Assembly: GCA_965644295.1 (NCBI GenBank)
Contig: CBFFRP010000149.1
Coordinates: forward strand, 124,001 to 188,000
DNA: 64,000 bases
Direction of reading: 5' to 3'
DNA from: Paraphysomonas bandaiensis
Taxonomy: Eukaryota; Protista; Chrysophyceae
The notes below the pieces were generated by a model. That model had not been told where the DNA came from. It saw only the letters and a program-made list of their open reading frames with translations, and did no database searches. Position numbers and translations under genes: made by a program. Shown one piece after another: positions 1 to 63,340 of this stretch (within the stretch, counting starts at the first letter, position 1; every line of letters starts with the position of its first letter).

Positions 1-1595
1 ACACTGATACATGCATTGATTTGGAATTCTGATCACACTGTTTTTACATCAGGTCAATAGTTTGAAGCAGGCCGAATCAACGAACTCTGACTGTAGCGTA
101 GGACTGATTGAGAGAAAACAGCGGGAGAAATCTGTTGGGTCATTTAATAGTCTGAAGTCCTCTTCTGCGTCTGATGTGAGTGTGTGTATTTCTGAATTGA
201 AAACGTATGACAAAGTATTGGTTGTATAGAAGAGCAGGAGTGTGTTAGGTCGTTGGTATCCTAGCCAAGAAGAGCGGGAGGCTTCACTGGAACAGATTAA
301 GAGCGCCCTACGTGATGGAGTCCAGGTACTCGTTTACCCCCACGAAGGAGGGTCGCCAGAATACGCCACCCTGTTTATTGAACGCACAAATCGGCGTATT
401 CTGTGGGAGAGAGAGTCTGGATCATTGGAAGGACTCTATATCAACGACCTCGCAGAAATACGGCCGCCAACTGAGAATGCGTACACTTTCGTGGTATGAA
501 CTGCAAACTTTAAATGCGCTTGTCTATTCGAAAATCTTATGGTGTCATGAATAGAAAATGCGTGTTCCTCGTAGATGTGAAGGGAAAAATTGTTTGTTTA
601 CTCTAATTGGAAGGTGAATACGCAACACTGAGATTACTTGGACCTGTTGGTGACGTAATTTCTAAAATTTTACAGTGAAAAGGCTGTTTCTCTTGGGGCG
701 AATTCTGCTGATCAATGTAAATTTCTTGTTCGCGGACTGAAACTCATTGCCGAATGTGCCATTCCCTCTAATATAAAACATATACGTGGAAAAGAGCAAT
801 GGACATTGGTGAGTTCAATACATGCACAACTACTCTGAGATACCATTGACTGGTATACAGGGACGGTTTATGATAATAAGAGGGGGACGCCTAACTAATG
901 CGGATCTAGTGGGACTCGAAGAGTTCAAGGCTACTCTTAAGAGAGGAATAGACGTCATGGTTATTTCTAAAGGGGGAGGTAGGGATTTGTGCTTTGATGC
1001 CAGCTAACTATTTGAGTCGTCGTTTTTTTTGTATTTGCTGTTGGTAAAATAGTATTCTAATCTACCCAACATACGTCAGGTCGTCGGGATCCGAAAGTGC
1101 TATGGTTAGATTCGTCTGAGTCGCGTATTATGACAGCAACGTAAGTGTGTTCTATTTCACTGTCTGGTGTGTCTCTTCCTAACTATTCTCAGACATAAGT
1201 ACGATAAGGCGGACGGTCTATCATTTTTCAGTGGTCTTGCGGTGCGTTGTCAATGATTGTGTAAATAATAACTCATGGGGTTATAGAAATTATTGGGGTC
1301 CAATGACAAAGGGATAAACATGGATGATATATCAGGTAAGTACTTGGTCTTGATTTGTATTTCGCTTTTTGACTCCTGGTTGGTTCTCATAGAAATTCGT
1401 CCGGGCTTTCAAGCATACATGTTTTCCATTCAAGAACCTCCACCTCACCCAAAGGAGGAATCATTAGCAGTATCCATTATTGGTAGTGAATGCACTATAT
1501 CGATGCTCATGGCATCACCTCAGGTGCGAGACCTTTTTGTATCGCATTTTCAAGGGCTGCTTAAAACTATTCGTCCTACTGTATCTGTGTACTGA
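1..1595 (+). CDS. Multi-exon protein with two tandem PH-like domains (5' end outside window)
   Basis: ORF pieces 242-499, 822-1007 and 1293-1595 join through GT-AG introns. Two similar units (L.+G+.V....G / ILW or LWL / +.D+.EIRP / ++G-SE..+S+) resemble PLC-type PH folds. Stop TGA at 1593-1595. Confidence 0.5.
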
Positions 1596-1744
1596 ATAAT
1601 GGTTCTTGTCAATGAGATGTGATATTCAATAGTTTATTTACGGCAGTTTTGTTAGACTTCCTCCACCTATGTATTGTGTAAATATGTGTCGAATTATTTC
1701 TTGAAAGCAGTGTCCAACATATAGCTTGTTGAAATTATAGTTAG

Positions 1745-1974
1745 CATCGGTGGGACGAATTCGGTACCTATAGGTCGCTCTACCTACCTATAGGTCCACC
1801 GCAAGTACCTAATAGGTACCTGCCTAATAGGTCCCACCTATAGTCATGCCTAATGACCCTACCTACAGGTAGGTGCCTAGCTGTCACCACCTATAGGTAT
1901 ACCTAGCTACCCTGCCTATAGGTGATAAGAGTTAGGTACCTACCTATAGGTACTCAGCGGGAGTCCCACCGATG
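1745..1974. mobile_element. MITE-like element, 230 bp, perfect 12-bp TIRs
   Basis: CATCGGTGGGAC (1745-1756) and GTCCCACCGATG (1963-1974). The interior is packed with ACCTATAGGT-like palindromes. No clean TSD (TAG vs TAA). Confidence 0.65.
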
Positions 1975-2185
1975 TAAGAATCGAGTTTTAGAGTGCACCA
2001 AATATTGTTCTTCTACATGAAAACTCATATCGCACACAAAATATTTAACCCCTAAAATCTTGGTACAAATGTACATTAGTAGTGACTACATGTTATAGCA
2101 ATTTAGAAGAGCTCACAGCAATGAATACAAATTGAACTGCTTTGAAGTCTTTATTATTTACAGAGTATAAATTCTCAATCCTTAG

Positions 2186-3271
2186 CTACTTGTTCAAGCG
2201 TAAGCACGATGTGATCTGATTCTTTCCCTTCTGAGATGGCGGTGTACCACTTCTTGAGTTACATTGTATAGAGTAGTTCAAAGATACAATGTAATGAAAC
2301 CAATAAGATGGTATATACAACACCTCTCCTGTACGTACAATTGTATCTATCGCCTGCGCTTGATCAAACCCACTTGCCCGTGCCTGTCGTATATCACTCC
2401 AATCTATGATGGAATGTCGAAACGATGGATGAGAGGGGTCTGATATTATTCCCAGGAATCGACAACTCTCCGGCGGAGAGAGTACATAACGTTTAGCACC
2501 TTTCAACATCGCTACCATATTTCTTCCTGAATCGTAGTGGGACTCAGCAATTATTCCCCGCATACCGAACCTACATTGGATCCCCTTATTCGCAGCTACA
2601 TTTGTTATAAAAAAATTCGACGTCTTCGTAGTAAAGAATCCTAAATCTCGCCCCACAAAGGTAGATTTTCTCTTGTTAATTCCAGCAGGATTATTCTTTC
2701 GAAAGTAAAAGTGATCTGTGTTGGATTCAGGCTTGTCTATATCTGCTTTCCTCGCAATATGTAACCACTGAGCAAATGTCATGTCCGATCGACCAGTGGG
2801 ACGTTTGGAAGGATCCATGCTTCTCTTCTCTTTGCTGTGGCGGTAATACATGAAATGATTAGACTTTGAAGTAATGGTGTTAATGTCCTTATCCCCACTC
2901 AGCATATCTAGCAAATACGAATCGCTCCATTTCGCCACCACATCATCTACATCCGGAACATCGTATACTTTAAAAGGAACTTCAGCATCTCTAAACCGAG
3001 TAGCAATTAATCTTTCTATGGGATCACTATAATTAAACGACTGTATTGTCTCTTTATAGTTCTCTGGAATATCGGGTATATCGGGATTCCAGTCGGATAA
3101 TACAGTTAATAAACTCTTAAAGGGTGGATAGTCTACAGCAGGAGAGTGTAGTAAAGGGGGTAAATTTGATTGTTGTAATTGACGGGATGATGTGATGTAA
3201 CTTCTATTAACAGCTGCTGAGGTCGTGTAATGCAATACCAGCCATATGATTGTATTAGTGAGAGTATTCAT
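2186..3271 (-). CDS. JmjC/cupin-like (Cupin_8) 2-oxoglutarate/Fe(II) oxygenase with hydrophobic N-terminus
   Basis: Intronless 361-aa ORF with ESHYDSGRN (HxD), K in GAKRY and GEVLYIPSYWFH. Confidence 0.85.
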   Translation of the reverse strand: MNTLTNTIIWLVLHYTTSAAVNRSYITSSRQLQQSNLPPLLHSPAVDYPPFKSLLTVLSDWNPDIPDIPENYKETIQSFNYSDPIERLIATRFRDAEVPFKVYDVPDVDDVVAKWSDSYLLDMLSGDKDINTITSKSNHFMYYRHSKEKRSMDPSKRPTGRSDMTFAQWLHIARKADIDKPESNTDHFYFRKNNPAGINKRKSTFVGRDLGFFTTKTSNFFITNVAANKGIQCRFGMRGIIAESHYDSGRNMVAMLKGAKRYVLSPPESCRFLGIISDPSHPSFRHSIIDWSDIRQARASGFDQAQAIDTIVRTGEVLYIPSYWFHYIVSLNYSIQCNSRSGTPPSQKGKNQITSCLRLNK

Positions 3272-3525
3272 ATATTTCGTTGCATATACGATAACTGAAA
3301 GATGTTAAGTAGCGGCTAAAGCATATTATTATCGTCTCTGTATAGCGATAACTTTAATAAGATCCACTTATATGTATATGATTCAACTGGCTGTCTATAG
3401 ACGTACCTCCCTATCACTACATATGTACCTCGTTACATATGTCCACACACTTACATAAGTACTCCTTTCATACGTACACCTACCAGCCTACAGCACTCTA
3501 TCCCTCTCCATATCGGACATATACT

Positions 3526-3648
3526 GCATCTTATTTTTCGGAAATAAATTGAAGTAAATATACTCTGTACTACTGCAATAAACTACGGCTGGTATACACA
3601 TAATTGTTGCCTCAATATACGAGGCATCTTGGAACAAAAATACACAAA
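3526..3648 (-). repeat. ~130-bp dispersed repeat, copy 1 (inverted, one end truncated)
   Basis: Reverse complement aligns with 32919-33048 and 35657-35786 (TATTTTTGTTC..ATGCCTC..ATATTGAG.CAACAATTAT..CTTCAAT..AGATGC). Confidence 0.7.
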
Positions 3649-3843
3649 CGTCAAATATCTATCGAATGATCTGCATATAGAAAATCCCACACAGGAGAAG
3701 TAGAAGAAAGAAGCCCAACATAACTACTAGAATCAGTGTAGAGTATAATCCCCAGTACAGTATATATATACTCATATATTAGATCAGATTACGTATATCC
3801 ATTGGCCTATACAAGTCAGTGACCTTTACGAGTTGCATTCTAC

Positions 3844-5574
3844 ATGGCTGCCTTTGATGATAATGAAGAGAAGCTATGTAGATACTGTTTCGGGGATGAA
3901 ACAGATGGTCCTCTAATATCTCCCTGTCAGTGCTCAGGAGGACAGAAGTATGTACATTTAGACTGTCTCAGACGTTGGCAAAGGATGGTAATCGTCAATC
4001 AACCAACTCATCCAGCGTATTATGAGGATGATGTGCGACATCATAAGTGTAATGTATGTTTAAGTGACTATACTTGTCCTCCTCCCACTCGTGGGGAGCT
4101 CATGGAAACCTTTACGGGTTAGAGTTTGCTATATATACATTTGTGTTGGGGATAATTTTATTGTAGGTCCTGAAATTGCGGCATCTCTATTCGAGGGAAG
4201 AATTATTGCATCACGAGATATCTTCTCAGAGAGTCTCGAGCGGCAGGTGGCCGATTTCCCACCATATTTGCGACTGATAAGTAGTTACGAGCACTGGATA
4301 CGAGGAGTATATCTAATTACCTCAGTTGAGAGCGATGATGAGGAGAAGGTCATTCCTATCACTGAACCAGAGTCCCTCGACGGCTTGATGTCGAGGCTTG
4401 ACGATAATTTAGAGATGACGTTCCATGGACAGCACCTGCGATTGGTTCGAGGTGGTTCTTTGGCATCTGTGAGGGAAGACGAGGACCTACGAGCTGCGTT
4501 ACAGTCTCTACAGCTTCCTGCACGCATCGTTTTGCGGTCAACGGCGCCTATCACGTGCGCAGATGATCACATAACAGCAGTTAACATTGCTCGCACCGTC
4601 GATAGACCAGTGAGGCCCGGAATGTATCATCAAGTTTATGAAGAGGTGCGACAAAGATACCGAAGTTTATCCAGAGTAGAAGTTGTACACTACATAGGTA
4701 TGCAATTGTAGAGTTTCCGTATCGAAGATGAGTTGGAGCAATTTGTTATTTTGCTGATTGAAGTGTGTCTGTGTAAAATTGATCATTTGCTGTGTTTTGA
4801 AAGGTGGGCCTGTTGATGCAAATGAGGTGACTACTTGTATCGTTTTGGGTGGTGCTCGTCGTGGATGGACGGTGGTCAAGGACCTTAAAGATGCACTTAC
4901 CCTTGCTGTTTCCCGCGGGTATAAGAGGCACGATGGCCAAGGGGAAGTATGCTCCGGCCAAACAGTCCGCGTTACTGGCCTAGTTGCTCGGGCGGACTTG
5001 AACGGGCGCATTGGTATGGCGCTTCGTTTCCTTCCCGAAGCGGGGCGATGGGAAGTGCAATTGTGTACTGGAGAGGGAATCCGTGTGAAACCTTCTAACC
5101 TAGAAGGACAAGGAGGGGGGCACGGTAAAGTTATGGTTTTCTGGGGAGATGCGAGGTGGTCGAGAGCTCAGCTACTGGTATGTATGTCTTCAAATTGTTA
5201 TGTGGTAGTTTTGCATTATATGATATATCTATATGAGTATCAAACACTGGCGTATATTGTAAATGCAATCACAGGGTGAGATTGCTAGAGGCCACTGGGG
5301 TCTGTGTCGAGCCACGGTAGGGGAATTTGTTGCACCTCCGAGTGAAGTATGGACAGGAACTCTTATTCCAGGAAGACTAGCATTTGCTCCCGTAAGTGCT
5401 ATGACAGATGAGCTTCTCAACAACGCAGTGGCAGAGGGAGGCTCTCAGAGACAAGAGATGGAAATGGCTATGGATGAAGCACGAAGAGCCGCACAAACTG
5501 CAGCTGGAGATGGAGAGCATGAAGAAAACGACGACGAAGGCGAGCAGGTACCTACTGAGGACAGTGCAGAGTGA
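3844..5574 (+). CDS. RING-CH (RINGv) zinc-finger protein with C-terminal DUF179/AlgH-like region, about 4 exons
   Basis: CRYC..SPCQCSGGQKYVHLDCLRRW..CNVC (C4HC3). Later HYIG|GPV and VFWGDARWSRAQLL|GEIARGHW across GT-AG introns. Confidence 0.75.
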
Positions 5575-6430
5575 TAAATAATTGCCTGTTCGTAATATCT
5601 TTCTCGTCGATGTATTGTTATGTAAGTATGATGTAGCCACTAGCTTAAATGTACAACAAAGCGATACGACCAAGAGTTGTTGTGTTGTTTTGAAGAATAG
5701 TTGAATTGAAATGGTAGTCCTGTTTGATACAGAAGTAATTATTAGTACGATGAATTTTGTCTCTGAACTACATGAGTTTAATCATGCAACGGGAAGTTCA
5801 CTTTGCATCTTTGCATTACACGTTAATCTCAACAATACTAAATCATGTGGTGTTCGAGTAGTACATCTGTTGCAATTTAGAGTATACTACCTGCAATGCA
5901 GAGTTAGACTATTGGAAATGTGTAAAAATGTAAAAACTACTTGAATGCGGTACATGTAAGGGAACAACACTAGCTCGGCCGCTAACTATGTCCAACTGAT
6001 AAAGATATTGACTGGGTTTTTTCCTTATGTTTTACAGCACACTAAATAAAGTACTTGCGGCCTTTACTTTTATAATTTTCCCATTGCCTTAGTGTATTTT
6101 CTATATAAAATTATCTGTAACCTCTTTAGCTCCATTAACATATGCCACGTACACACGTACACCATGCTTTCATACATGCTGACATCCTGATAAGATTTTA
6201 TAACGGGTTGTAAAACGAGTTTCATTGAAACGACAAAATCTCATTTAAACGTCGTTAGCCATAAATCTACTCTTTACTATAAATAATAACTGCTATTAGC
6301 TATTAGTGTCCCTAAAGTCGGTATCGATTTGATTTCGATTCCGAAGCTAAATTGTTATGTGGATGAGTTGTCAGCAATTATTAATTGAGGTACGTTATAG
6401 TTGCAGTATCCTGATGTGAAATATTTTGGT

Positions 6431-6540
6431 TTTGACGAGATGAATACCATAAACACCTAACCAATCTTGACGAAATAGTTGTACCAAAATTGGCTTGACG
6501 AGATAATTCAACTGTTTAACTGGGTTGAATAATACAACTC
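6431..6540. repeat. Degenerate solitary TIR related to the MULE at 42204-53610
   Basis: TTGACGAGATAATTCAACTGTTTAACTGGGTTGAATAATAC resembles the MULE end GTGACTAGGTAATTCAACCAATTTGACTAGGTTGAATAATA. GACGAGATGAATACCA resembles GACTAGGTTGAATACCA. Confidence 0.45.
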
Positions 6541-6643
6541 AATTTGTTTCAAAGTTGTACAATGAGTCCAATTACGATTACCATATATAATCCTGCTACA
6601 TCAGCCCATACATGACAATCACTATGACACAGAACGACGCCTA

Positions 6644-7506
6644 TTAACAATCATTTTCTCCACCGATGTTCTCTTCTTCACCACCACTTTCATAATATCC
6701 ATCGGAATCTGAGTCCATGGGTGGCAGATCCATATCCCCCATATAGCTATCATCTATCATACAACCCTCGCGATGGCGGTCCCGTCGCTGTTCTTTCTCC
6801 TTCTGGTGTGCAGCAGCACTATCCATATAACCTTGTTGAATTCTTTGTACATCAGTCGACGATTCGCAAGACGCATATGCCTCGAGAGCTTCAACATTAA
6901 GGGCAAGGAACTCTTCTCCGTAACCAAAAGGCTCCATCATCATAGCAGCTTCTTCTCGGAAACCAGTGATATACAAACAAGCGCACATCGCTTCTGCTGT
7001 GTTAAGCTTATGAGGGCGACCATAATTAACTGAGTTAGCAGCCACAAGTAGTGGAAGCAGCCGCTGATTTCGACCTTTTCCCATACTATCGAAAGGTATC
7101 TCATCAAGACGATTCCACGAACAATTAATACCAGCAACACCAAAGTTTTGAACAATATCTCTGTCTGCTGGACTGACATATTCTTTGGCCTCAGATGATA
7201 GAACAACCCCTTGAAATGTTTGTCCAACACGCAACAGCTTTGCATATCCGAGACGTCTCAGTTTACTTCCACTATCTCTGAAGAGAAACTCATTAGATGG
7301 TATAATGAAACAGTATGATGTTACCTCTTCGGGTCGTTTTGACCAAACTCCCACATGTAGAGCCCTAAAGGAAACGACTGCTTCATCTCTCCCTCATTAT
7401 CACCACCAGTGCCTTCATTATCCCGTGCAATGTCACGGTCGGTTCGGACAACTATCCTGTCTGCTGAAGAGTACTTTCCACCTTTACCTTTTTTTGATTT
7501 TCCCAT
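6644..7506 (-). CDS. TSR3: 18S rRNA aminocarboxypropyltransferase TSR3 (2 exons, intron 7278-7324)
   Basis: Spliced MWEFGQNDPKR|DSGSKL, VSPADRDIV..G..GINCSW, RLLPLLVAANSVNYGRPHKLNTAEA, F.YGEEFLALN and an acidic tail. Confidence 0.92.
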
Positions 7507-7580
7507 TGCTTAAAAGTGTATAGCTATATGAAATCAACAGCAAACTTCTATAGCCAACCTCCACTGGCCTCCTCTACCAC

Positions 7581-7836
7581 CATACATACATACATACATA
7601 CATACATACATACATACATACATACATACATACATACATACATACATACATACATACATACATACATACATACATACATACATACATACATACATACATA
7701 CATACATACATACATACATACATACATACATACATACATACATACATACATACATACATACATACATACATACATACATACATACATACATACATACATA
7801 CATACATACATACATACATACATACATACATACATA
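7581..7836. repeat. (CATA)n microsatellite, about 64 copies
   Basis: Pure tetranucleotide run between two divergently transcribed genes. Confidence 0.98.
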
Positions 7837-7963
7837 AGATTTTTTTAACGGGTTGTTATTGAGTTCAATTCAAACGCTGATGGTCTCTTCTATTCTTCTT
7901 ATCTCCATATGATTTCATGCCTTCTAATCACACCCACTCTATCATATAATTCCTTCAACCACT

Positions 7964-10879
7964 ATGGGTGATTACAGTCTCCCTGATTGGGATGATTTGA
8001 ATATAGAGTCGTTACATATCACTCATTCAGAGCCAACAGATATCCGAAGAGGTTCTACCTCTACTCCAATAGAATATAAATATAAAGATGATACAATAGG
8101 AAGAATGACTTCATCTCCACGTAAGGACATATCTCCAACCACTCATAATCAGACTCGTACGGATAGAGTTACACATACAACAGAGTATCGTGATATTATT
8201 ATGAACAAAGATATGGAGATATCTCATTGTATGAATTCTATTAAAAGCGCATCTGAAGCGATTGCTCTGATGAATGATGTTGTCTCTACTATTGAAAATT
8301 ATATCAATGATGAGGGTGGAATAGACAGTAAAGTAAGTCCATGATCATTGCAATTTTATTTAGTGATTTTTGTGTTTATTATCTTTTTAAAAGCACGTAC
8401 AAAAACTATTACATCCATTGCGGGGTATACGCAACGACAACACCTCGAGCCACGAATCTGTTCCTCGGGAGGCTGTCATTCTTTCTGCCCAACTAAAGCA
8501 GTTGTCGCATGATATCCGTAGTCTACTGGGCACCATGACTGATTGCATGATGGATAGAAGTCGGATATACCAAGATCAGCTGAGGCGGATGAGAGAAGTA
8601 TCAAACTTGGCTACTCGAAATGCCATACAGGTGATTTATTATTTGGATATGTAGGGATTACATGGCTTTTTTGAAGAATTTTTTCCCATGGGTGCATGCA
8701 TTAGTGCCAGATAAATATTGACTTTGCACAGGCAGAGAAAGCAGAGTTTAGCTCGACGGTGATCCAGCTGAAGACTCTGCATGTACAAGATATGGAACAA
8801 GCAGCAGCTGAGCGCGCCCGCATTCACGCTGAGGCTGAGGATCGCATCCAAGAAGTACTCAAGCAACTCGACGAGGTACAAGAGGAAAACGCTCGTTTAC
8901 GGGGCGCGGACGAGCGAGCTGCTGATGTGGAGGAGCAAATATCAGCAGCGATTCAGCGGGCACGCAGAGAGGAAGCTGCTTTACAAGATGAGCGAATGAA
9001 GGAGTTAAGGGAGCATTACGAACAGCATCTGAAAGATGCAGACCGTGATGCTGAAAGAAGACTTAAAGAGGCTGAGGAATCGTATAAGGTATGTAGATAT
9101 TAGAGTATTACTGCTCTGACACGACTTCAGGACAAGTTAGATATGCAGGCAAAACATCATGAGAAAATGTATGAGTTGATCGTATCGGAGCGAGAGCGCA
9201 AAGAAGAGGAGTGCGCTCAACTGCGGGCTACTATATCTGATCTAAAGGATGAGGTGTGTATTGGGAGTGATACCATGCCCAATAATAATATTGTCCGGGA
9301 TTCAGATATCTGTGGAAAAGGACAAACACCTACAGGAACTTGCAGACGAGAGACAAAAGCAGCAAGTTGAGAGAGACCAACTTAGTGCAGAGCATATTCA
9401 AGTGGTAGCAGCGGTGAAGGCCGAACTGACAGCTAAGATAAGACAGATGAAGGTACGAACAGTGTACGCAAAATAAGACCATTCTGACTAATGAATTCGT
9501 AGATCGAGGAGCGAAATCGTATAGAGGATGTGGAGGTGCGATATGCTCGTGAAAAGGAGCAGATAGAAGCTGCACATGCGGCGGAAAGCGATCGTATGGT
9601 AAATCAGCACCGGCGGGCTCTACAGCAACAGCGGGTGTGTTTTCCTCACGTATGCTAGATGAATCGTTGTTAATAGTATTTTGTCATAGGCTCAGCTGGA
9701 GGTAAGACTGGAAGAGGAGTTACAGTCAGCTAAACGTCGTCACGACAACGTGAGTTCAATTTATTTTTTGCATTCACTTATACTTCTGAAAGTGTCGTTT
9801 CACAGGAAACCAGACGGTTTACTTCTGAAATCGATAGACTCAGACGTGTCGTGGCAAGAAAAGGGATGGGTGATGACGGTGTTGAAGAAACCGATTTCGG
9901 CAGGAGCCAATTGCATAGAAGTACTGTTCAATCCCAATCTAACACCTGGAGAGATTTTAGCCGAACACTCCGACCCTCGGGATACACCAAGTCTTTCGGA
10001 GCTATCAATGAAATACGGTCGCCCGAAAGACGACCAGAATCAATTGCCCAGGAACCGAATTCAGCACACCGTGGGAGCCGTAGTGTCATGGGAGAGGAGT
10101 CCTTCGTTGGTACGACGAACGATGGTGATGACAAACAGACACAATCGACAGACAGAGACACTGTTGAGAGCTTGCTTCTTCCAAAAGGCAGTCCAGGGTC
10201 ACCAGTGGGGAAGTCTAAGTCATCTCTTAACTGGGGGGCCCTGAACGAGTCCATCGCCATGCAGGTAGTATATAACGTTAATATCGGTTCTGAAATCATT
10301 TGTTTTCTATTTAGGAGTCTGATTTTGTTAAGGAATCAGGGCGAGGCCAGGATCATTCGGTGAGACAAAGCGATGTTCGGCCTTCCGGCACAAGCTCACG
10401 TACCCCATCTCGATCCCGAGTGCTTGATGTTCGAAGCAGCGTGGATAGTCTTGGAGCTCCACCACCACCTCCTCCAGACGCTTTTGATGTGGATGTTGCC
10501 TGGGAAACGTCTAAGCAGCGCGACCATAACGTAGGATCTAATGCCGCGAAAGTTGGAAAGTACATGAAACAACTACAGAAGTACCTTGAGGTGTGGTTTC
10601 TCAGTATGGTCGATTTATATTTTTCACACTATATAGGGGGATATCGACACCGGTATGTCTGATACATTCTTCTCGTCCACAATGGATGAAGAAGGTGGTG
10701 ATTTGCCGGAGGATTTGATGCGTATTGCTGGAGAATTTACATTGAGGTATGTACGTGTTATCGTTTCCACAGAGTTTGTTTAATACTTTTATTGTAGAAA
10801 CGATATTGGTACTGATGGTAGCGATGAAAATAATTTTACTGACATGCTGGATGAAGTCGATAGTTTAGATGGTGAATAA
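7964..10879 (+). CDS. Multi-exon coiled-coil protein, unknown function
   Basis: Successive ORF segments rich in E/Q/R/A heptads (8759-9476) joined by short GT-AG introns. Low-complexity and acidic C-terminus. Stop TAA at 10877-10879. Confidence 0.65.
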
Positions 10880-11388
10880 TTAATGTTATTTGTTTTTCAG
10901 TGCTGGAGAATTATGAATATTAACCCACAATTTCTAGATTGATATATTTCTAGTGGTTCCTAGTTATTAATAATAGGAGTTTCGATGATATTAGAATTAA
11001 TGAGCTAATTTTTTCCAAAATATATAACTATTCTCATTTCGATTTCAGTACGTTCAAATTAAGTTATATGTGTCTAGTATCCTAATTGAGTTTATATTTT
11101 ATGATAACACCACTGCTTTGTCGAGATTTGAGATTATCTAGTGAAGATCTAGTATTTGTTGTTACAGTTTAATTCTATAATCTTATATATAATTTATAAT
11201 GAAGTCATGTTTTCTCTCGTTCTGTTGGAATACGTATGGTTCTCTAAGATAGTACTGTAGAATACGATAAATACAATGTGAAAAACAGTAATACGTAGTC
11301 AATAGGCAAAGGTGCTATATAGCTATAACTGTGAAACTGAAGTATTATATCATGACGATTCAAGATACGGAAGTTGAGCAGTGGTTGA

Positions 11389-53728: not shown

Positions 53729-56700
53729 TCAATCACATTCATATAGTAGTTCTAACTCTTCGTCACTAGGACGAGTCCATGTGGACTCCTTTGTTTTTCG
53801 GTTGTAGTAGTATGGAGCGCTCGCCGAGTCGGTAGAGACTATACGCCATAAAGTTTTCTTCTTGCGTTTACTTTTTTTGGGGCCACTCTCACCACTGGAT
53901 ACTTGAACCGTAGGTAGAACCTGGCACACAATAACATTTAAGCATCTACAGCTTCCATAATGGGAAAACTCACAGTGCCATTCTTTGGTGGATCTAAGGA
54001 GCCTGAATTGTCCATACTGGAGCCACTTTCAGCGGGTTCGCCACTATGAAGATTGTGCCTTTTCAAAATAGAATCTGCTAGGGCGAGAGCGGCTGCAGCA
54101 TTCACTTTTCCTTCATCCTCGCATTCCTTCGGTGGCGACACAGCAAATGTACTACCAGCACAAATCGGAGGGCCCTCGTTATCTAAATGGCTTAATTCGC
54201 CTATTTCCGCATGGTCATGACTACTGGCACGACGGAGATGACCGGCAGCGGCTGCTGCAAATGAGCTGCGCGGAGCAATCTCGTTGTCACTATCGGATAC
54301 CTGACTTGGCGGTATATTCGTGCTCACAGCTGATAGAGCTAATCGTTGGGCTGCTTTCATAGCAAATAAACTTCTTCGCCTTACGGGCTTAGAGTCCTCC
54401 GCCTTTGAAGTCTCGTCAGCAACAACAGGGACAGACAAAGTTGAGGTTGCACACGATACGTCGCTAGATTTATCCAAACCTGATGTTGTTGAAACTTCAG
54501 ACACACACTCAGATTCTGAAAGAACCTCAGACGCGGAAGTCTCTACACAGCTACTTCCAATACAAACATCAGCACTTGCACATGTTGAGGCTTGCGAGGA
54601 ATCGCTAGAAATCAATTTCTTTCCCCTATCCACTGTCGAATCATCGTTGCATTCCTCATGGCTAGGTCCTGCCGACTTCCTCTCATCAGTGAAATTGTCC
54701 TCAACACCGATTGATGTGTTGTCTTGCAATATTTCAACAGGGCGGTCATGGATATCATTGTCTTCTGCGGTACAATTATTTTCATTTCCAGTTTCACTGT
54801 GGATAATCTCGCCATTGATATATGTCATATTCATTTCTTCTTCCATTGGCCGTTCCCATTGCGTTTCATCCGTAAGTCGATTGTGATAATAATACCGACC
54901 TGAAGCTGGGTCCTCTAGTATCTGCCATAATAGTCGTGGCTTATGAAGAGATTCACTTTCATCTGGGTATTCAATGCTGTCGTTTACGCCGCCTTTGCGA
55001 TGAACCTCACAGGTGATCTCTGAAACCTGAAATTAATGTAAGTAGACCTTACGACTCGTTCAAGCATATAACCTCATCACTCTCGTCATAGTCATTACCA
55101 CCATTGTACGTCGAAGGTTCATCATAACTGCATTCATGTTCACCGTCGTGATTGCTTTGATAGTAACTCTCATATGTGTCTTCTCCGTTGTACTCACTAC
55201 ATTGAGATTCATTTTTTCCTACATCATGATTTTGGCAGTGCTCAGACAAAGGGGAGATATCTAAATACTTCTGTGAACAATTTCCTCCACTTGAAGCGCA
55301 TTGATCGTGGTTTGACAAATCAAGTTGACCACTTGAGGAAGCTACAGATTCACCCGCTGTGTCATCCACAGGTGCAGCCGATACTCCATTGTGCTTGTTG
55401 AATATTTCATTCGCGCGAGCTATTGCCTCGGCAATATCAACACCTTCAACGGAACCAGACTCGGAAATTTTATCTTGTTGCTGCTTCTGTCGGACTGGAA
55501 TTGTGCTTGGCTTAGTTTTCACGGGAGGCCTTTTCTTAACGGTAGCCTTGCTTGTAATAGACTGCTTACTAATAGATTTACTCGCATGTCGTTGTTGCGT
55601 GGAATGGGATTTGCTTTGCTCGGACAACGGTAAAAAAGCTGAAGTGGGGGAATCTAACTTTTTCCGGGTCGCCACTTTCTTCCCATGAACTCCAGTCCAC
55701 TGACTATCGATATCAGAATGAGAATCTGACATAAGTGACTGTTCAGACGAAGGGCTAAATCGAGACTGTAAGTAATTCTTTATCAACGATGATGTCATAG
55801 TTCGACTTTCTCCTGTTGGTAGGCCAGTGTTCCCACTAGAAGTATTCTCTAGAGACTCCATCCCCAAATGACTAGACCGCAGGCTCTCTAGAAATCTCTG
55901 CGGAGAAAACATTGGCGAATTTACATCCATCTCAGAGTCATTTGAGGATGACTTGGTGCGGATGACATTCTTTCTTTTCGTATTAGCAGGAGGTGGAAGA
56001 CGAGGTTCTGGAGGTTTATTCGAGGAAGGTTTAGTCATCTCACCACGCACATTGGCCTTTATCGAATTATTGTTTGATTTTGAAGATTTGCTGGCTTCAA
56101 TGTCCCCACTTCGAGCGCTGTACAACGTAGAATTTTCTAATTCTTTCTCCAACTTCTTAATTTTCGCGACATCTTCCCTGTGCTGGTCTTTGAGCTGATC
56201 TATCATTTCAGATGATGCAGACAAATCATGTTGTAGCTGAGTGTTAGTCTATATATACTCCCTATTAAAAGTATGAAACATAGATGGCTACCGTGCACGT
56301 ACCTTTAGAAATATTTTTTTTGTTCTTTGGAGCTCATCCGCTTGAAGCAAGACGGATGCTTCCATCAAACAAACTCGGTGGTATATATCCTCGTTAATAC
56401 CATTTTTGGCACTATAATCCGCTGTGAGTGGAGTGCTCTGAGTCTGAAGCCATGAATGATACTGCTGCAGCCACATCCATCGCTCCTCCTGAAGAGCATC
56501 TGCTTCGTCCATCTCCTCTTTCCGTCTGTCAAGCTCTTCCCTCTGAGCCTTCAACACACGGCACTGCAGGCGAGATTTCGCATCGAAGGAATCGCATTGC
56601 TCATCGACTAAGGCAAGGCGTGCCGACAACACTTCACCAGATGGGGAGTGGTCAATATCAACTGAAAACTCATCATCTTCAAATACTGCTGCTAAAATGG

Positions 56701-58197
56701 CCCTTTTCTCCTCGCGAAGTATCCTAGCCTCTTCCTGAGAAGAATAGAGTCCTTTCATCAAGCGGGAATTTTCTTCTTTGAGATGCACAAGCTCTTCACT
56801 CACACATGCATCAAAATCCATATTGTCGCGTGTCTGACTCGACGCGGGATTTTCATTGGACGAAGATGATCCAAGCGTACCAATCTCTTTCGCGAGCGAC
56901 GAAAGGTCAATGCTTCCGCCACACTTCTGGAGAACTACCTGAAGAAGAGACTTCAAACGAGTAATTTCCTGTTGACAGCGTTCAATTTCCGCCCCAGAGG
57001 AGCCGTACGCTGACACAGTATTTGCACTGGCCACCACTTGTACTTTCATTGCCCTATCTGCAAACTGAAGAGTAGAAGTAGTCTCTTCGATGCACGAAAT
57101 CGATGGTGAAATCGTGACAATAAATAGTGTCTGAGTGTTCCCACCGAGACTGTCTTGAAGAAGCCGGGTTAGTTTGGAGTCTCTATAAGGAATGTGGGCT
57201 CGACTAGGCTTGAGTAAGGCCGATATACAATTACCGAGAGCTGAAAGGGAGCGGTTGATAGAAGTGAGCTCCTTAATCCTAGCTTCAGAAAAGGTTGCCA
57301 TCTGATGACTTTTCCATTTCTCAGATCCTGCTAAATCTACGAGACATATTTTCGACCGACGTAGCTCCCTACCACTTTCAATTAACATGTAAACTATGAA
57401 CACTGTGTGGGATCTAGACGAATGATCGTTCATGTCTGTTGCAGCAACGCTGCGGCACTTTGCTCCATCCCAGAGCACCTGCAAAACTTCATCTACAGTG
57501 GTCACAGACACTCTTGTTAACCCTGGAACAACAATTTCTCCTTTCTTATTTTCCCGTATTTCTAAGTTTTTATTTGCATCCTGCGAGTCCAAGAGATCAA
57601 TTATTTTAATGTCGTTATACAACTCCACATACGACACAGAGATACTAAAGCTTCCTCCCATTTTGTTCAGATTTCCAAAGAGCCATTGCATTGATCGTGG
57701 AACAATTCCCATATACATAGAATCACGAGATATGTCTGTTAACGACTTTTCCATACATGCCGAGTCAGTAGCCATCTCCCAAAGATCATACCCAAGCATC
57801 GTAAACGTTTTTCCCTATAATAAATAAATCAACTAGATATCGAAATTGTAAATACAGAGCACAAAAAATTGAACTAACCGTTCCAGTTTGTCCATCTGTT
57901 TAACAGGTTAAACATGTCAGTTAAAGTAATATTAAATAACATACATGTAAACACTGTACAGTTATATCCTTGTACAGAGCTCTCTAGTAGAGGTATTATA
58001 CTTTCAAACACCTCTTCTTGTGAAGCTTCTTCAGTTAAAACAGCATCTAGAATAAATTTCCGTCCATAGCTTGATCCTGAATGACTTTCTACTTGAATAC
58101 ATTGACCTTTACTACTAATAGCCATTTCATCATTTCGAGAGATTTCTTTTGAGTTTAATGGCCTAATTCGTGCTAAAACTTTAATTCTATCATGCAT
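53729..58197 (-). CDS. N-terminal-motor kinesin with coiled coil, long disordered tail and two WW domains
   Basis: IKVLARIRP, GYNCTVFTY|GQTGT|GKTFTM, NDHSSRSH, LVDLAGSE and HIPYRDSKLTRLLQDSLGGN. WW domains LWQILEDPASGRYYYHNRLTDETQWERP and LWRIVSTDSASAPYYYNRKTKESTWTRP, joined in frame by GT-AG introns. Confidence 0.88.
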
Positions 58198-58745: not shown

Positions 58746-61700
58746 ATGGATTTATCATCATCCCCTATTGAGAGTATTCGTCATTGGGCGACGGATCGTA
58801 TGCGTAAACGCTGTTTTGAGTTTAATGAAGGAAGTATGGAGGATAAGGAGCATTTAGGACTAAAAGGTTAGGAAATCATGTTCTATACAATAGTAGTAAG
58901 TAACAGAGTTGTATTCAGGGGCTAGTTTATGTGAATTATCAAAGTAAGATACACTGTATTTGTAATATATTTGATATGGCTTAAAGACTTGGTCTTCCTG
59001 TTCCTCCGGGCTTTGTTATATCCTCAGGTAAGATGATTCTTTAGATTACATTCATCCGTTCTTTTCTTCTTATGATTATTAGAAACTTGCGTGGATTTCT
59101 TCAAGGGTAGCTCGGATATGCCTGCTCACTTGATGGATAGCTGTCAGTCCAGCATTAAAAATTTAGAGCGCAAGACAGGAAAGATATTTGGCCTTCATAC
59201 ATCGCCGAAGGAGTCAATGCCACTATTACTATCGATTCGGTCCGGCGCAGCAGTCGACATGCCGAGGTTCGTTCACGTTGCGAAACTCAATGGCTCGTAA
59301 CTATTAAGTTTCAGCATGATGGACTCTGTATTAAATGTGGGTATTAATGAAGAGATTGCCCAGAAAATAGCAGATATTACCGGAAATCCAAGATTTGCCC
59401 TGGATGTTCACCGACGCTTCCTGCAGCAATATGGAACGGTCGTCCTCAAGGTGCCCAAGAGCTGCTATGCTGACATTTTAAGCGAGGCAAAAGCCCATGA
59501 CGGGGTTGCATCCGACTGCGATTTGTCTTACCCTGCGCTGCAAAAAGTAGTCGACGGATTTCTAAAGGTCGCGGATGTTCCCAATGATCCAATGGAGCAG
59601 TTCCGCAGAACTGTCGAGGCAATATTTTGTTCGTGGTACTCTCCTAGGTATTTTCATTACCCCGTAATTGCTATGACCTTATATCTTAAAAGAGCTGTAA
59701 AATATCGCGAGGTCCACAATATTGATGACGTATTTGGTACTGCAGTAGTTGTCCAGGTATGTAGTCAGTTATATGTATTGTTGATGTTAAGCAGAGTAAT
59801 GCTTAGAGTATGGTATTCGGAAATCTCAACTCAGAATCGTGCACGGGACGAGTCTTCACTCGTGACCCAAACACCGGTGCTGACCATATTTACGGTACAG
59901 TACTTCCTTCCAATTACTGTGATGAAGTCCAACATTCCGGTGGTGAAAATTTCAGGGGAATTCGTTTGCCAAGCTGAGGGAGACGATGTGTCAGAAGGCA
60001 TGGAGCAACAGCCTAAAAAAATTGAAGTATGATTTGAGTGATACTGTATGACTTAATGTAAAATGTAATTCATTATATAGGATATGAATTCTTGTATGCC
60101 GGAGGTCTATCGCGAGCTTCTTCGAACCACCAGTGTTATCGAGCAATTTTTTGGTGACGCACAGGTGATAGTACTTTACAAGAGCGCTACTTTAATGTCA
60201 TAGCTTCGTTTGATGTATCATTAAGAATAATTCAACTTTTGTTTACTTGATAGGAAATCGAATTTACAGTGCAGAGCGGCGATTTATTCATCCTGGAGAC
60301 AATTAATGCCCGACGTTCACCTGAAGTATGTGGAGTGTCTCATATTCATTTATCTGTACGTAACTATTTGCTACAGGCTAATGTGAGGATAGCGGTTGAC
60401 ATGGTCAGGAGTCTTCAATTAACGGTAGAGTATATATGTTTTTGTTAACTGTACAGTAATATTACATTGTAGGAGCGAGAAGCTATTTTGCGTGTAGACC
60501 CAAAAATGGTGCAGTGCTGCGTTTACTCAGTCACAAGATATAACTCTGTCTGCTGTTGGTAGATGACGTACTTTATGCACCCGAAAATTGATCCTCAACA
60601 AGGTAGGAATATTGCATGATACTCTTTAGTATTTTCTTAGCCTTCTTATCTTTAGATACTTACGAAGAATTAGTTCTCGGTTACGGTTTTCCTACTACAT
60701 CAGGCGCAGTGACTGGTCTTGCAGTGTTTACGGAAACAGATGTCATTCGACTAACTGGCGAGGGCAAGCCCGTTATCCTGGTATTAATACTGTTGTTCTG
60801 CACTCTACGGAATGATCAATACTCAGATTCGTAATGAGTCCTCTCCAGACGATATTTCAGGTATTAACTTGGCGAGCGGCGTCCTTACTCTTCACGGAGG
60901 TACGATCAATTTATACCACGGTGTAGAATCTTTGCCTAATCTATTTCCAATGGGTAGGAGTGACAAGTGCAGCTCCAGAACTTGCGAGATCTATGGATAA
61001 GACAGCTATTACTGGTTTGCTTCCATGTTTCTGGTGCCATGACTCACACAGTTACACAGGTGCCGCAAGTAGTGGTTTGGAGCTTGATCTCCAAAACGAG
61101 TGTGTGTACAATGACTCAGGAAATATATGCATTCGAAAGGAAGAGGTCAGATGAGAAATCGATGTCACGCAACATGACGCTATGATTTCAGGAAATAACC
61201 TTGGATGGAGCCACTGGGAGAATTTTGAAAGGCGATATTGCAATGATACCGACAGGTGTCAATTTGCGTGCATTCCTCTCTGTCTTATTGCTGCTAGTAA
61301 GTCATACTTTCTCAGGTGCCAAAGCTGCTTTCAAGACTCTATTAAGCTGGTCTGATCAGTACCGCAAGTGGGGTATGGTACTTTCAATAGTGCTATAGTG
61401 AAATATTTTTCAGAATGTCCGTCTTCGCCACGGTTAGCTCCATTTCTGATGCTTTCAGAGTAAGCTACCTTTTCATACTTCTGAGCATTTGACTTGTTGC
61501 ATAGGCCATTGAGTTGCGACCCGACGGAGTGGGACTATGCCAGTTGATCATGCTCATTATGTTGTGTTCTGTTTGAATTGTTTGCTAGGACGGAGACAAT
61601 GCTTCAAAAATCTAATTGTCGAGACTTGATGAGTACTTTTCTTCTTTCTTCCTCGGAGTTAGTTCCATTTTGCGTTCAGTGTACACATCTCTTGATTATA

Positions 61701-63340
61701 TAGTACAGGACGCTGAAGACACAGAGTCTGCAAAAGTTGGAGAGTATACATACGGAAGATCTTCAAGAGGTGTTGCAATTGTAATACGCCATGGTACTAG
61801 CTTATTACATGAGCTAGGTATTTGAAGTCTTTCCTAGCCGGGTTGTGTCTGTCAGGTAGTTGAGAGTATAATGGATAGAAGTAGCGTTTATTGACAACTA
61901 CTACCAGGCTGTTTGACGCTTCTATTAATGAGTTTTTTGTTCCTACGGGTTGGTCGCGTCATGTTAATATCCACTGGTTGATGAGCTCCTGTGTAGCGGA
62001 AGGGGAAGCTCAAAGGTCCTATGACACTCGAGAAACGAATCCTGCCCTGGGTGTTCGAGGTTGCAGGTGGAAGCATGGTTTAATTTGAGTATCAACATCC
62101 CTTACGTTCTGTTTTAAAGGAGAGCCATTGTTGATCCCGATTTTCTGATTATGCAAATACGTGCTATAATGAGTACGTTGAAATGTATATTGAAAGTATA
62201 CTGATTACTTGTGGTTCAGCGGCTGGAATCAATGTGATGAAGAATGGAAAACCTGTTAGCCTTGATGTTCTTGTACCGATGCTCACTTCTGAACATGAGG
62301 TATTAATTGATTAAAGTTTTATACGATTGTATTATTGGTATTTATCAACAATCGTCAGTTGGAAATGGTTATCGAAACAATCAACTCTGCTACGGACAAG
62401 GTATTTGCTATAGCCTGTAGCGTATATGTATTCGACTCATGCTTGGTATACAGATTTTTGAGGAGAAAGGGGCCAAAATTGAATTCCGTATTGGTGCCAT
62501 TATCGAGGTCATTGTTAGCTTTTGTGAGAGACTGATTTCATTTTGCTAATAGACCCCTCGCGCCTGTCTTCGCGCCAACAAAATCGTAAAAACGGTAGCA
62601 CTATATGAAGGGATTTCAGTTCTGACCAAGATTATGTAGGAGGGGCTTGGACTCGTTGTATTTGGTCTTGACCGACTCACCGAGCTGACATGTGGACTCT
62701 CAAAGTGCTATATAGCTTCATACACAATGGCAATAATTCACACCTTTCTACTAGGGATGACACTAAAGAGATGATTGCTACGTATAACGCGCAGGGAATC
62801 ATTCATAAGGGTATGAGTTGATAGAACATGTTCACAGGAAGCTTGTAATGATCTAGTGATTGTGTGTCTAGACCCCTTCCGTGCCCTCGATAAGCGTGGC
62901 GTTGGAGCCCTTCTAACAGCTGGGGTACGCTTAGTCCGGTAAGTTTGACGTTGCATAGTCTAGTTGATAGCAACACGTATCATGTATAAATCGCAGAACG
63001 ACTATTGGTACTATGCCCATTGGGGTTTTTGGCAGTCAATGTGGCCATAGGAAAGCTATCGACTACTTTGATAAGTTGAACTTAGATTTCGTGAGTTTTG
63101 TCAATTACAATGCTATGATAAATTTATGTATCCTGTTTCAATGAGCAGATTGTAAGTTCTATCAATCAAATTCCTTCGGTGAAAATTAGTTGTGCCCAAG
63201 CCTACATCACCGCGATGAAAGGTATGTGCTGTTGCTGCCAATATATGATAATGATGTTATCAGAATCCAAACCGATGTGGTTCGAAGATTCACGAGAAGG
63301 CTTCTTGGAGGATTTCCCGGCCTACCCCTTTCTTATTTAA
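58746..63340 (+). CDS. Pyruvate phosphate dikinase (PPDK)-like protein, more than 30 introns, catalytic residues degenerate
   Basis: Spliced LGLK|GASLCELSK|LGLPVPPGFVIS, PLLLSIRSGAAVDMP|SMMDSVLNVG, GTAVVVQ, EIEFTV, RNESSPDDISG, ITLDGATG, GVGLC|RTE, ETNPALGVRGCR, IE|TPRACL and DPFRALDKRGVGALL. Stop TAA at 63338-63340. Confidence 0.88.

Follow-up and report, generated by a model that had tools for sequence, protein, structure and literature searches.

A conserved pyruvate, phosphate dikinase homologue without its carrier histidine is a probable pseudoenzyme in the chrysophyte Paraphysomonas bandaiensis

Pyruvate, phosphate dikinase (PPDK) is the textbook swivelling-domain enzyme, and its histidine is treated as invariant. 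Here we describe a full-length PPDK-like gene of the colourless chrysophyte Paraphysomonas bandaiensis that encodes alanine at this position. The gene lies in a 64,000-nucleotide stretch of contig CBFFRP010000149.1 (assembly GCA_965644295.1, positions 124,001 to 188,000 of the forward strand), referred to as the window. Because the carrier histidine is gone and key residues of both active sites are lost, the encoded protein almost certainly cannot run the dikinase cycle with ATP, Pi, and pyruvate. Its open frame, its intact splice sites, a dN/dS ratio (omega) of 0.03 to 0.06, and His-less orthologues in other species support the view, already taken in an initial annotation of the sequence, that the gene is an intact pseudoenzyme under selection and not a decaying copy. 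Retention of the protein probably reflects a new function outside catalysis, for example ATP binding.

We modelled the gene with a custom spliced profile aligner against bacterial and chrysophyte PPDKs, then used chrysophyte proteins to refine it. The resulting 2,730-nt frame runs from an ATG at 58746 to the end of the stop codon at 63340, with exons of 25 to 333 nt and introns of 42 to 89 nt (Table 1). The terminal stop is the only one in the 37 exons, which contain no internal stop and no frameshift, in agreement with the open exons and intact splice sites first reported. Thirty-four introns were found by the aligner, and two (61949-61996, in frame, and 63222-63263) were added by hand from comparison with a sister gene. 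All but one of the 34 share column and phase with the sister gene at locus C231. Transcripts of C231 and of a second sister, C162, splice 34 of 35 and 26 of 29 modelled introns, respectively, both across the His loop; this validates the gene structure that they share with the window gene. The start of the protein is common to C231, C162, and L029 (run ERR14369873), an orthologue from another organism.

Along its full length, the protein follows the PPDK order of ATP-grasp, swivel, and phosphoenolpyruvate (PEP)-binding barrel domains. Its ATP-grasp domain is 41% identical to that of a bacterial PPDK and 78% identical to that of C231, the exon at 59316-59648 matches PPDK structures (E 1e-19), and sister proteins match PF01326, PF00391, and PF02896. 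Structures were predicted for two transcript-derived sisters, P0151 and P0158, which stand for the window protein. The AlphaFold model of P0151 (49% identical to the window protein; pLDDT 88) superimposes on PPDK structure 1kbl with a TM score of 0.87 and on the barrel-docked 1vbg with a score of 0.70. That of P0158 (pLDDT 88.5) matches the nucleotide domain of maize PPDK with a Z score of 36.5; its other structural neighbours include HpeI (Z 18.8), the synapsin C domain (Z 9.8), and Cdc123 (Z 7.8). No plastid or signal peptide was seen by eye. Pro-Phe-x-hydrophobic C-terminal ends occur in the window gene, C231, L029, P0034, and P0214, on tails that are acidic in the window gene's clade; no recognised targeting signal was found in these five tails.

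The residues of the active sites fall into two groups (numbering is that of Clostridium symbiosum PPDK, transferred via alignment with annotated bacterial PPDKs). Nucleotide and anion anchors are kept (Lys22, Arg92, Gln240, Asp280, Glu323, Arg617, and Glu745), as is Arg665. Lost are the phosphoryl-transfer residues His455, Gln335, Arg337, Asp321, Arg561, Asn768, Asp769, and Cys831, of which we take Cys831 to be the acid/base catalyst and Asp769 to be a Mg ligand. The GCA codon at the His455 position lies within an exon starting at 60958, and no alternative exon that would restore a TSH-type loop exists in any frame of 60781-61200. Much of the initial annotation was borne out: the full-length, three-domain homologue without the catalytic His, and the motifs LETI, FGLDRL (62661), GVFGSQCG (63022), LGLKG, and SIRSG, are all where it had placed them. 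It had also listed an RTE motif as kept, but the codon concerned is split over an intron (61541-42 plus 61589) and encodes Gln, as in the sister transcript; the Arg had been read from the acceptor AG of the intron. Its further claim that losses concentrate at catalytic positions holds only in part: 9 of 18 chosen active-site positions are kept, versus 136 of 198 other near-invariant columns, and this is no significant concentration (Fisher p = 0.12).

Table 1. Features of the His-less PPDK-like gene in the window and of the gene syntenic with its relatives
Feature	Coordinates	Strand	Basis and remarks
PPDK-like coding gene, whole	58746..63340	+	37 exons, 36 GT-AG introns, 909 aa; ends match C231 transcript and L029
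ATP-grasp (nucleotide-binding) domain, N-terminal, exons 1-10	58746..60325	+	PPDK homology
Lys22 equivalent, kept	58863..58865	+	Alignment
Arg92 equivalent, kept in 11/11 copies	59238..59240	+	Alignment
Asp321 to Glu; Glu323 kept	60254..60262	+	Alignment
Gln335 to Glu, Arg337 to Ile	60296..60304	+	Alignment; LETI at 60293-60304, canonical Q-T-R lost
Swivel (His) domain, central, exons 14-18	60656..61255	+	Alignment; 68% identity to C231
Active-site loop: Thr453, Ser454 kept; His455 to Ala (GCA, 60969-60971); Val458 to Glu (60978-60980)	60963..60980	+	Alignment
PEP/pyruvate barrel domain, C-terminal	61414..63221	+	Alignment; Arg617, Glu745 kept, Arg561 to Gln
Asn768 to Asp, Asp769 to Arg	62670..62675	+	Alignment
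Cys831 to Phe	63028..63030	+	Alignment; Cys of QCG four residues further on
Final exon, encoding an acidic C-terminal tail with P-F-L-I at its end	63264..63340	+	Tail ends P-F-L-I in C231, P-F-L-M in L029
CLC channel gene	G000:C231:120650-121151; L029:1500-3620		Conserved microsynteny with His-less PPDK

Relatives in other assemblies were found by searching one window exon against all representatives. L029 is full length, has Ala in place of His, and shares most intron positions; in both L029 and C231 the His-less PPDK has a CLC gene as its head-to-head neighbour, and the two CLC genes are 64-65% identical. The His position is Ser in L032 and Pro in L038, an orthologue of the P. bandaiensis locus C349. 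These three genes from other organisms and the four full-length P. bandaiensis copies form one clade (SH-aLRT 99), made up of two old subfamilies and nested in the chrysophyte PPDK radiation; the trees are quick ones with long branches, and placement is to be taken with care. Because spliced sister genes and orthologues in other species, one of them syntenic, also lack the His, its loss is old on this comparative evidence. Canonical PPDKs are retained in Epipyxis and Mallomonas, and His-less PPDKs of Ochromonas CCMP1393 (P0155, P0214, P0030, and P0034) fall outside the clade, which suggests that the His was lost more than once in chrysophytes. P0155 has a fully canonical pyruvate site, and lists of PPDK expression in this strain may include such copies.

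The window gene and C231 differ by a dN of 0.20 and a pS of 0.84, at which synonymous sites are saturated. For five genes, the maximum likelihood omega is 0.039 overall (0.033, 0.038, and 0.058 in the N, swivel, and C domains), values that are approximate because of this saturation; a model with omega fixed at 1 is worse by 864 log units. A decaying pseudogene, or an assembly error at the His codon, is thus scarcely credible. Word searches that used sister proteins and one exon did not turn up a transcript of the window copy, as either would allow, but GCA and CAC/CAT have no base in common at any codon position, the His is replaced by Ala, Val, Ser, Arg, or Pro in paralogues and orthologues, the 37 exons are undamaged, and the branch of the window gene (0.15) is the shortest of its clade.

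The 62.6-Mb assembly contains 11 PPDK-like loci, not one of them canonical. Four are full length (the window gene on C149, C231, C162, and C349), and all four have lost His455, Cys831, Asn768, and Asp769. The other seven (C19, C77, C132, C151, C204, C238, and C352) comprise the nucleotide domain only; at C19 and C151, the two inspected, unrelated genes lie downstream, and Pfam scans of the nucleotide-only copies showed no extra fused or substrate domain. Three loci match transcript-derived proteins almost letter for letter: C231 (P0159/P0278), C162 (P0151/P0001), and C132 (P0158, a 375-aa product). P0158 is labelled MMETSP1103, taxon Paraphysomonas; we take MMETSP1103 to be P. bandaiensis.

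A canonical PPDK was found in the assembly neither by hidden Markov model, nor with a canonical chrysophyte PPDK as query, nor by His/Cys motif patterns, with the reservation that the assembly may have gaps. Motif matches were at chance level, and the single T-S-H-A match (C41) was rejected as a hidden canonical gene for want of PPDK similarity. The same method recovered pyruvate kinase and an intron-rich ATP-dependent PEP carboxykinase (PEPCK), so PEP synthesis need not depend on PPDK. There was likewise no PF03618 match to the PPDK regulatory kinase PDRP, though short exons could escape. PPDK as an enzyme seems to have been lost from this genome.

These results bear on the proposal of the initial annotation that the protein acts on a true PPDK, or on the kinase of that enzyme, as partner or decoy. 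As a regulatory partner, dominant-negative subunit, or decoy, it would need a true gene that is missing from the assembly or was present only in an ancestor, and we find this unsupported and quite improbable. Thr453 and many C-domain invariants are kept, and canonical and degenerate copies coexist in other chrysophytes (P0318 with P0055 and P0035 in Mallomonas), which may be how the family originated. Set against this are the lack of a canonical PPDK in an assembly that yielded PEPCK and pyruvate kinase, the lack of a PDRP match, and strong selection that persists after duplications within the lineage. Moreover, PDRP phosphorylates PPDK only in its phospho-His form (PMC6019023), which the window protein cannot form.

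We favor instead a function in the nucleotide domain. Seven copies have no other domain, all 11 retain Arg92, every copy in which it could be modelled retains Lys22, and position 335, which is Gln in 90 of 90 canonical PPDKs, is acidic (Glu or Asp) in each of the 11, which argues that this domain carries the selected function. Across the copies, Lys22, Arg92, Gln240, and Glu323 are almost always retained; C162 departs at 323, where it has Lys, and carries Asp at 335. In the nucleotide-only genes, Asp321 is in most cases replaced by Tyr or Phe, and Gln335 by Glu or Asp in all seven. In the related enzyme RPH, Lys22 contacts the ATP phosphates (PMC4844700), and the nucleotide domain closes upon ATP binding (PMC4844700, PMC12167813). 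We therefore propose a retained adenine-nucleotide pocket and a role as nucleotide-binding sensor or scaffold, a reading in which our confidence is evenly balanced. The window protein would retain the three-domain PPDK fold, probably as a dimer, and its ATP-grasp cleft would take up an adenine nucleotide such as Mg-ATP. Opening and closing of this domain could then alter how the remodelled swivel domain, with Glu458, and the acidic tail are displayed to partner proteins. Comparable to synapsin or Cdc123, it would be a cytosolic nucleotide-binding sensor, a scaffold, or an assembly factor. It would not regulate PPDK, an enzyme that the assembly lacks.

Several points weigh against a nucleotide-binding role or weaken its basis. 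Gly101, Thr106, and the 279-287 loop, which adjoin the nucleotide site, are altered in the window protein. The N domain is the best conserved in ordinary PPDKs too, which leaves its lower omega little weight as evidence. The fold predictions rest on alignments of mostly canonical PPDKs, and the failure to find a transcript of the window gene counts here as well. Lastly, the roles of individual residues are taken from mutagenesis of the C. symbiosum enzyme; of these, just the roles of Lys22 and the His are confirmed in papers (PMC4844700, PMC13400623).

A pocket of this kind might also serve new chemistry, with the ATP-grasp domain alone moving the gamma-phosphate straight to a small molecule or protein as a kinase, ligase, or ATPase and the other domains being accessory. 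The change of the invariant Gln335 to Glu or Asp, which extends to most degenerate chrysophyte copies, and the existence of stand-alone N domains would fit such an enzyme. By eye, the hairpin at 335 matches the D257...E270 hairpin of Escherichia coli DdlB, whose Glu we take to bind two Mg ions in ordinary ATP-grasp ligases and kinases. Of this metal motif (acidic...Glu-x-Asn), however, only the Glu is present: where the motif has its Asn, at the second residue past the Glu, the copies have Ile, Val, Ser, or Lys, with no conservation. The lack of any added substrate domain and the residues of C162 at 323 and 335 also speak against a new enzyme, which we consider unlikely, although it is the main alternative to a sensor or scaffold.

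Alternatively, the kept residues might merely fold the protein, which would then be a nucleotide-independent structural or scaffold protein, or a binder of PEP-like anions by its C domain. With Val458Glu next to the lost His and Asp769Arg where Mg was once bound, the swivel domain could be locked onto the barrel; Glu458 occurs in nearly all members of the His-less clade, and Arg769 occurs in the window gene, C231, C162, and L029. Gly and Pro invariants are the best-kept class (45 of 52), and Arg617, Glu745, and Arg665 are retained. Yet position 769 is His, Gln, and Met in C349, L032, and L038, Lys22 and Arg92 survive even in the most divergent copies, and seven copies have dropped the swivel and C domains entirely. 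The closer match of the sister model to 1kbl than to the barrel-docked 1vbg points the same way, though it proves little. Together, these observations make a nucleotide-independent role distinctly unlikely.

It is more doubtful still that phosphotransfer continues by other means, either through another residue such as His449, six residues upstream, or by action in trans on a His carrier in another protein, the arrangement of the split dikinases HpeHI and PpsAB. His449 is conserved across the clade, split dikinases with a free ATP-grasp subunit are known (PMC12167813), and HpeI is among the structural neighbours noted above. But His449 is evidently inherited and not a replacement, because the canonical chrysophyte PPDK P0008 carries it beside an intact His455; Gln335, Arg337, Cys831, Asn768, and Asp769 have been lost too, and no His-bearing swivel domain was found elsewhere in the genome. 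Both routes are very improbable.

A broader scenario, which we advance tentatively, is that the Paraphysomonas lineage lost PPDK as an enzyme while the gene multiplied into proteins that are either full length or nucleotide domain only. Their ATP-grasp site would have been retuned, with Gln335 replaced by an acid and Arg337 lost, to give a new nucleotide-sensing signalling module or a new His-free phosphotransfer activity, and other chrysophytes would have undergone similar retuning. That metabolic enzymes have pseudoenzyme relatives is already known; what is new here is a selected, expanded His-less PPDK family that replaces the enzyme. We found no literature on such a conserved family in chrysophytes or elsewhere in a search that left most subscription papers outside. 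Strong selection has preserved a His-less PPDK in more than one species, and its copies have increased in number in a genome seemingly without enzymatic PPDK. Copies that grade from canonical to partly degenerate to nucleotide-domain-only form a natural series in which one can ask what a dikinase scaffold does without catalysis. In addition, several such proteins are called PPDK in databases; taken at face value in chrysophyte genomes or metatranscriptomes, these labels exaggerate how far abundant bacterivorous protists can convert pyruvate to PEP.

Other observations concern neighbouring or separate genes. In the window, a kinesin motor gene (56288-58197, minus strand) stands head to head with the PPDK-like gene, with approximately 550 nt between the apparent starts. 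L031 (ENA ERZ25074135) has two full-length PPDK-like genes head to head (about 1300-5350, minus; 6300-11200, plus) with roughly complementary defects: one keeps the ATP site and the His and has lost Asn768/Asp769, the other keeps the His and the pyruvate site and has lost Gln335/Arg337. P0145 (on contigs of up to 131 kb) is full length, lacks the His and the Cys, and sits on a long branch among bacterial PPDKs; it is apparently separate and probably a bacterial pseudo-PPDK. L023, on an Azospirillum plasmid (NZ_CP029830), is a 571-aa "PPDK" that is too short for a C domain, is divergent from a pyruvate kinase gene, and has a VadK-like length.

Among known systems, PPDK itself (EC 2.7.9.1; TIGR01828; PDB 1KBL, 1VBG, and 5JVL) is the closest in domain order, length, and fold. 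Identity is 29-41% by domain and approximately 40% to the canonical Epipyxis PPDK, and Lys22, Arg92, Glu323, Thr453, Arg617, and Glu745 are shared. The window protein differs in the eight phosphoryl-transfer residues listed above and in its acidic tail, and the assembly differs in holding 11 degenerate copies and no canonical one. By descent and predicted fold the window protein is a PPDK homologue; judged by its residues, it is not to be classed as an active PPDK, because the defining catalytic residues fail.

VadK of Mycobacterium tuberculosis (Rv1127c; PMC13400623) is likewise derived from PPDK and has moved from central metabolism to regulation, a role of the kind that we propose for the window protein. 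VadK lacks the C domain and keeps and autophosphorylates its His, the change of which to Ala abolishes autophosphorylation (PMC13400623), whereas the window protein keeps the C domain and lacks the His; by analogy, VadK is the nearest functional precedent, but a mirror image. The split dikinases HpeHI, CreHI, and PpsAB and rifampin phosphotransferase (PMC12167813, PMC4844700) offer a free-standing ATP-grasp subunit comparable to the seven N-domain-only copies, but they need a His-bearing swivel domain, of which none was found in this genome, and Q-x-R is lost here.

The synapsin C domain and Cdc123 are ATP-grasp proteins known for ATP binding and partner assembly and not for ligase chemistry. 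They share the ATP-grasp fold with the model of the nucleotide-only paralogue and may serve as a working model for the P. bandaiensis family, as an analogy and not a membership, since the kinship is at the level of the fold and far below that to PPDK.

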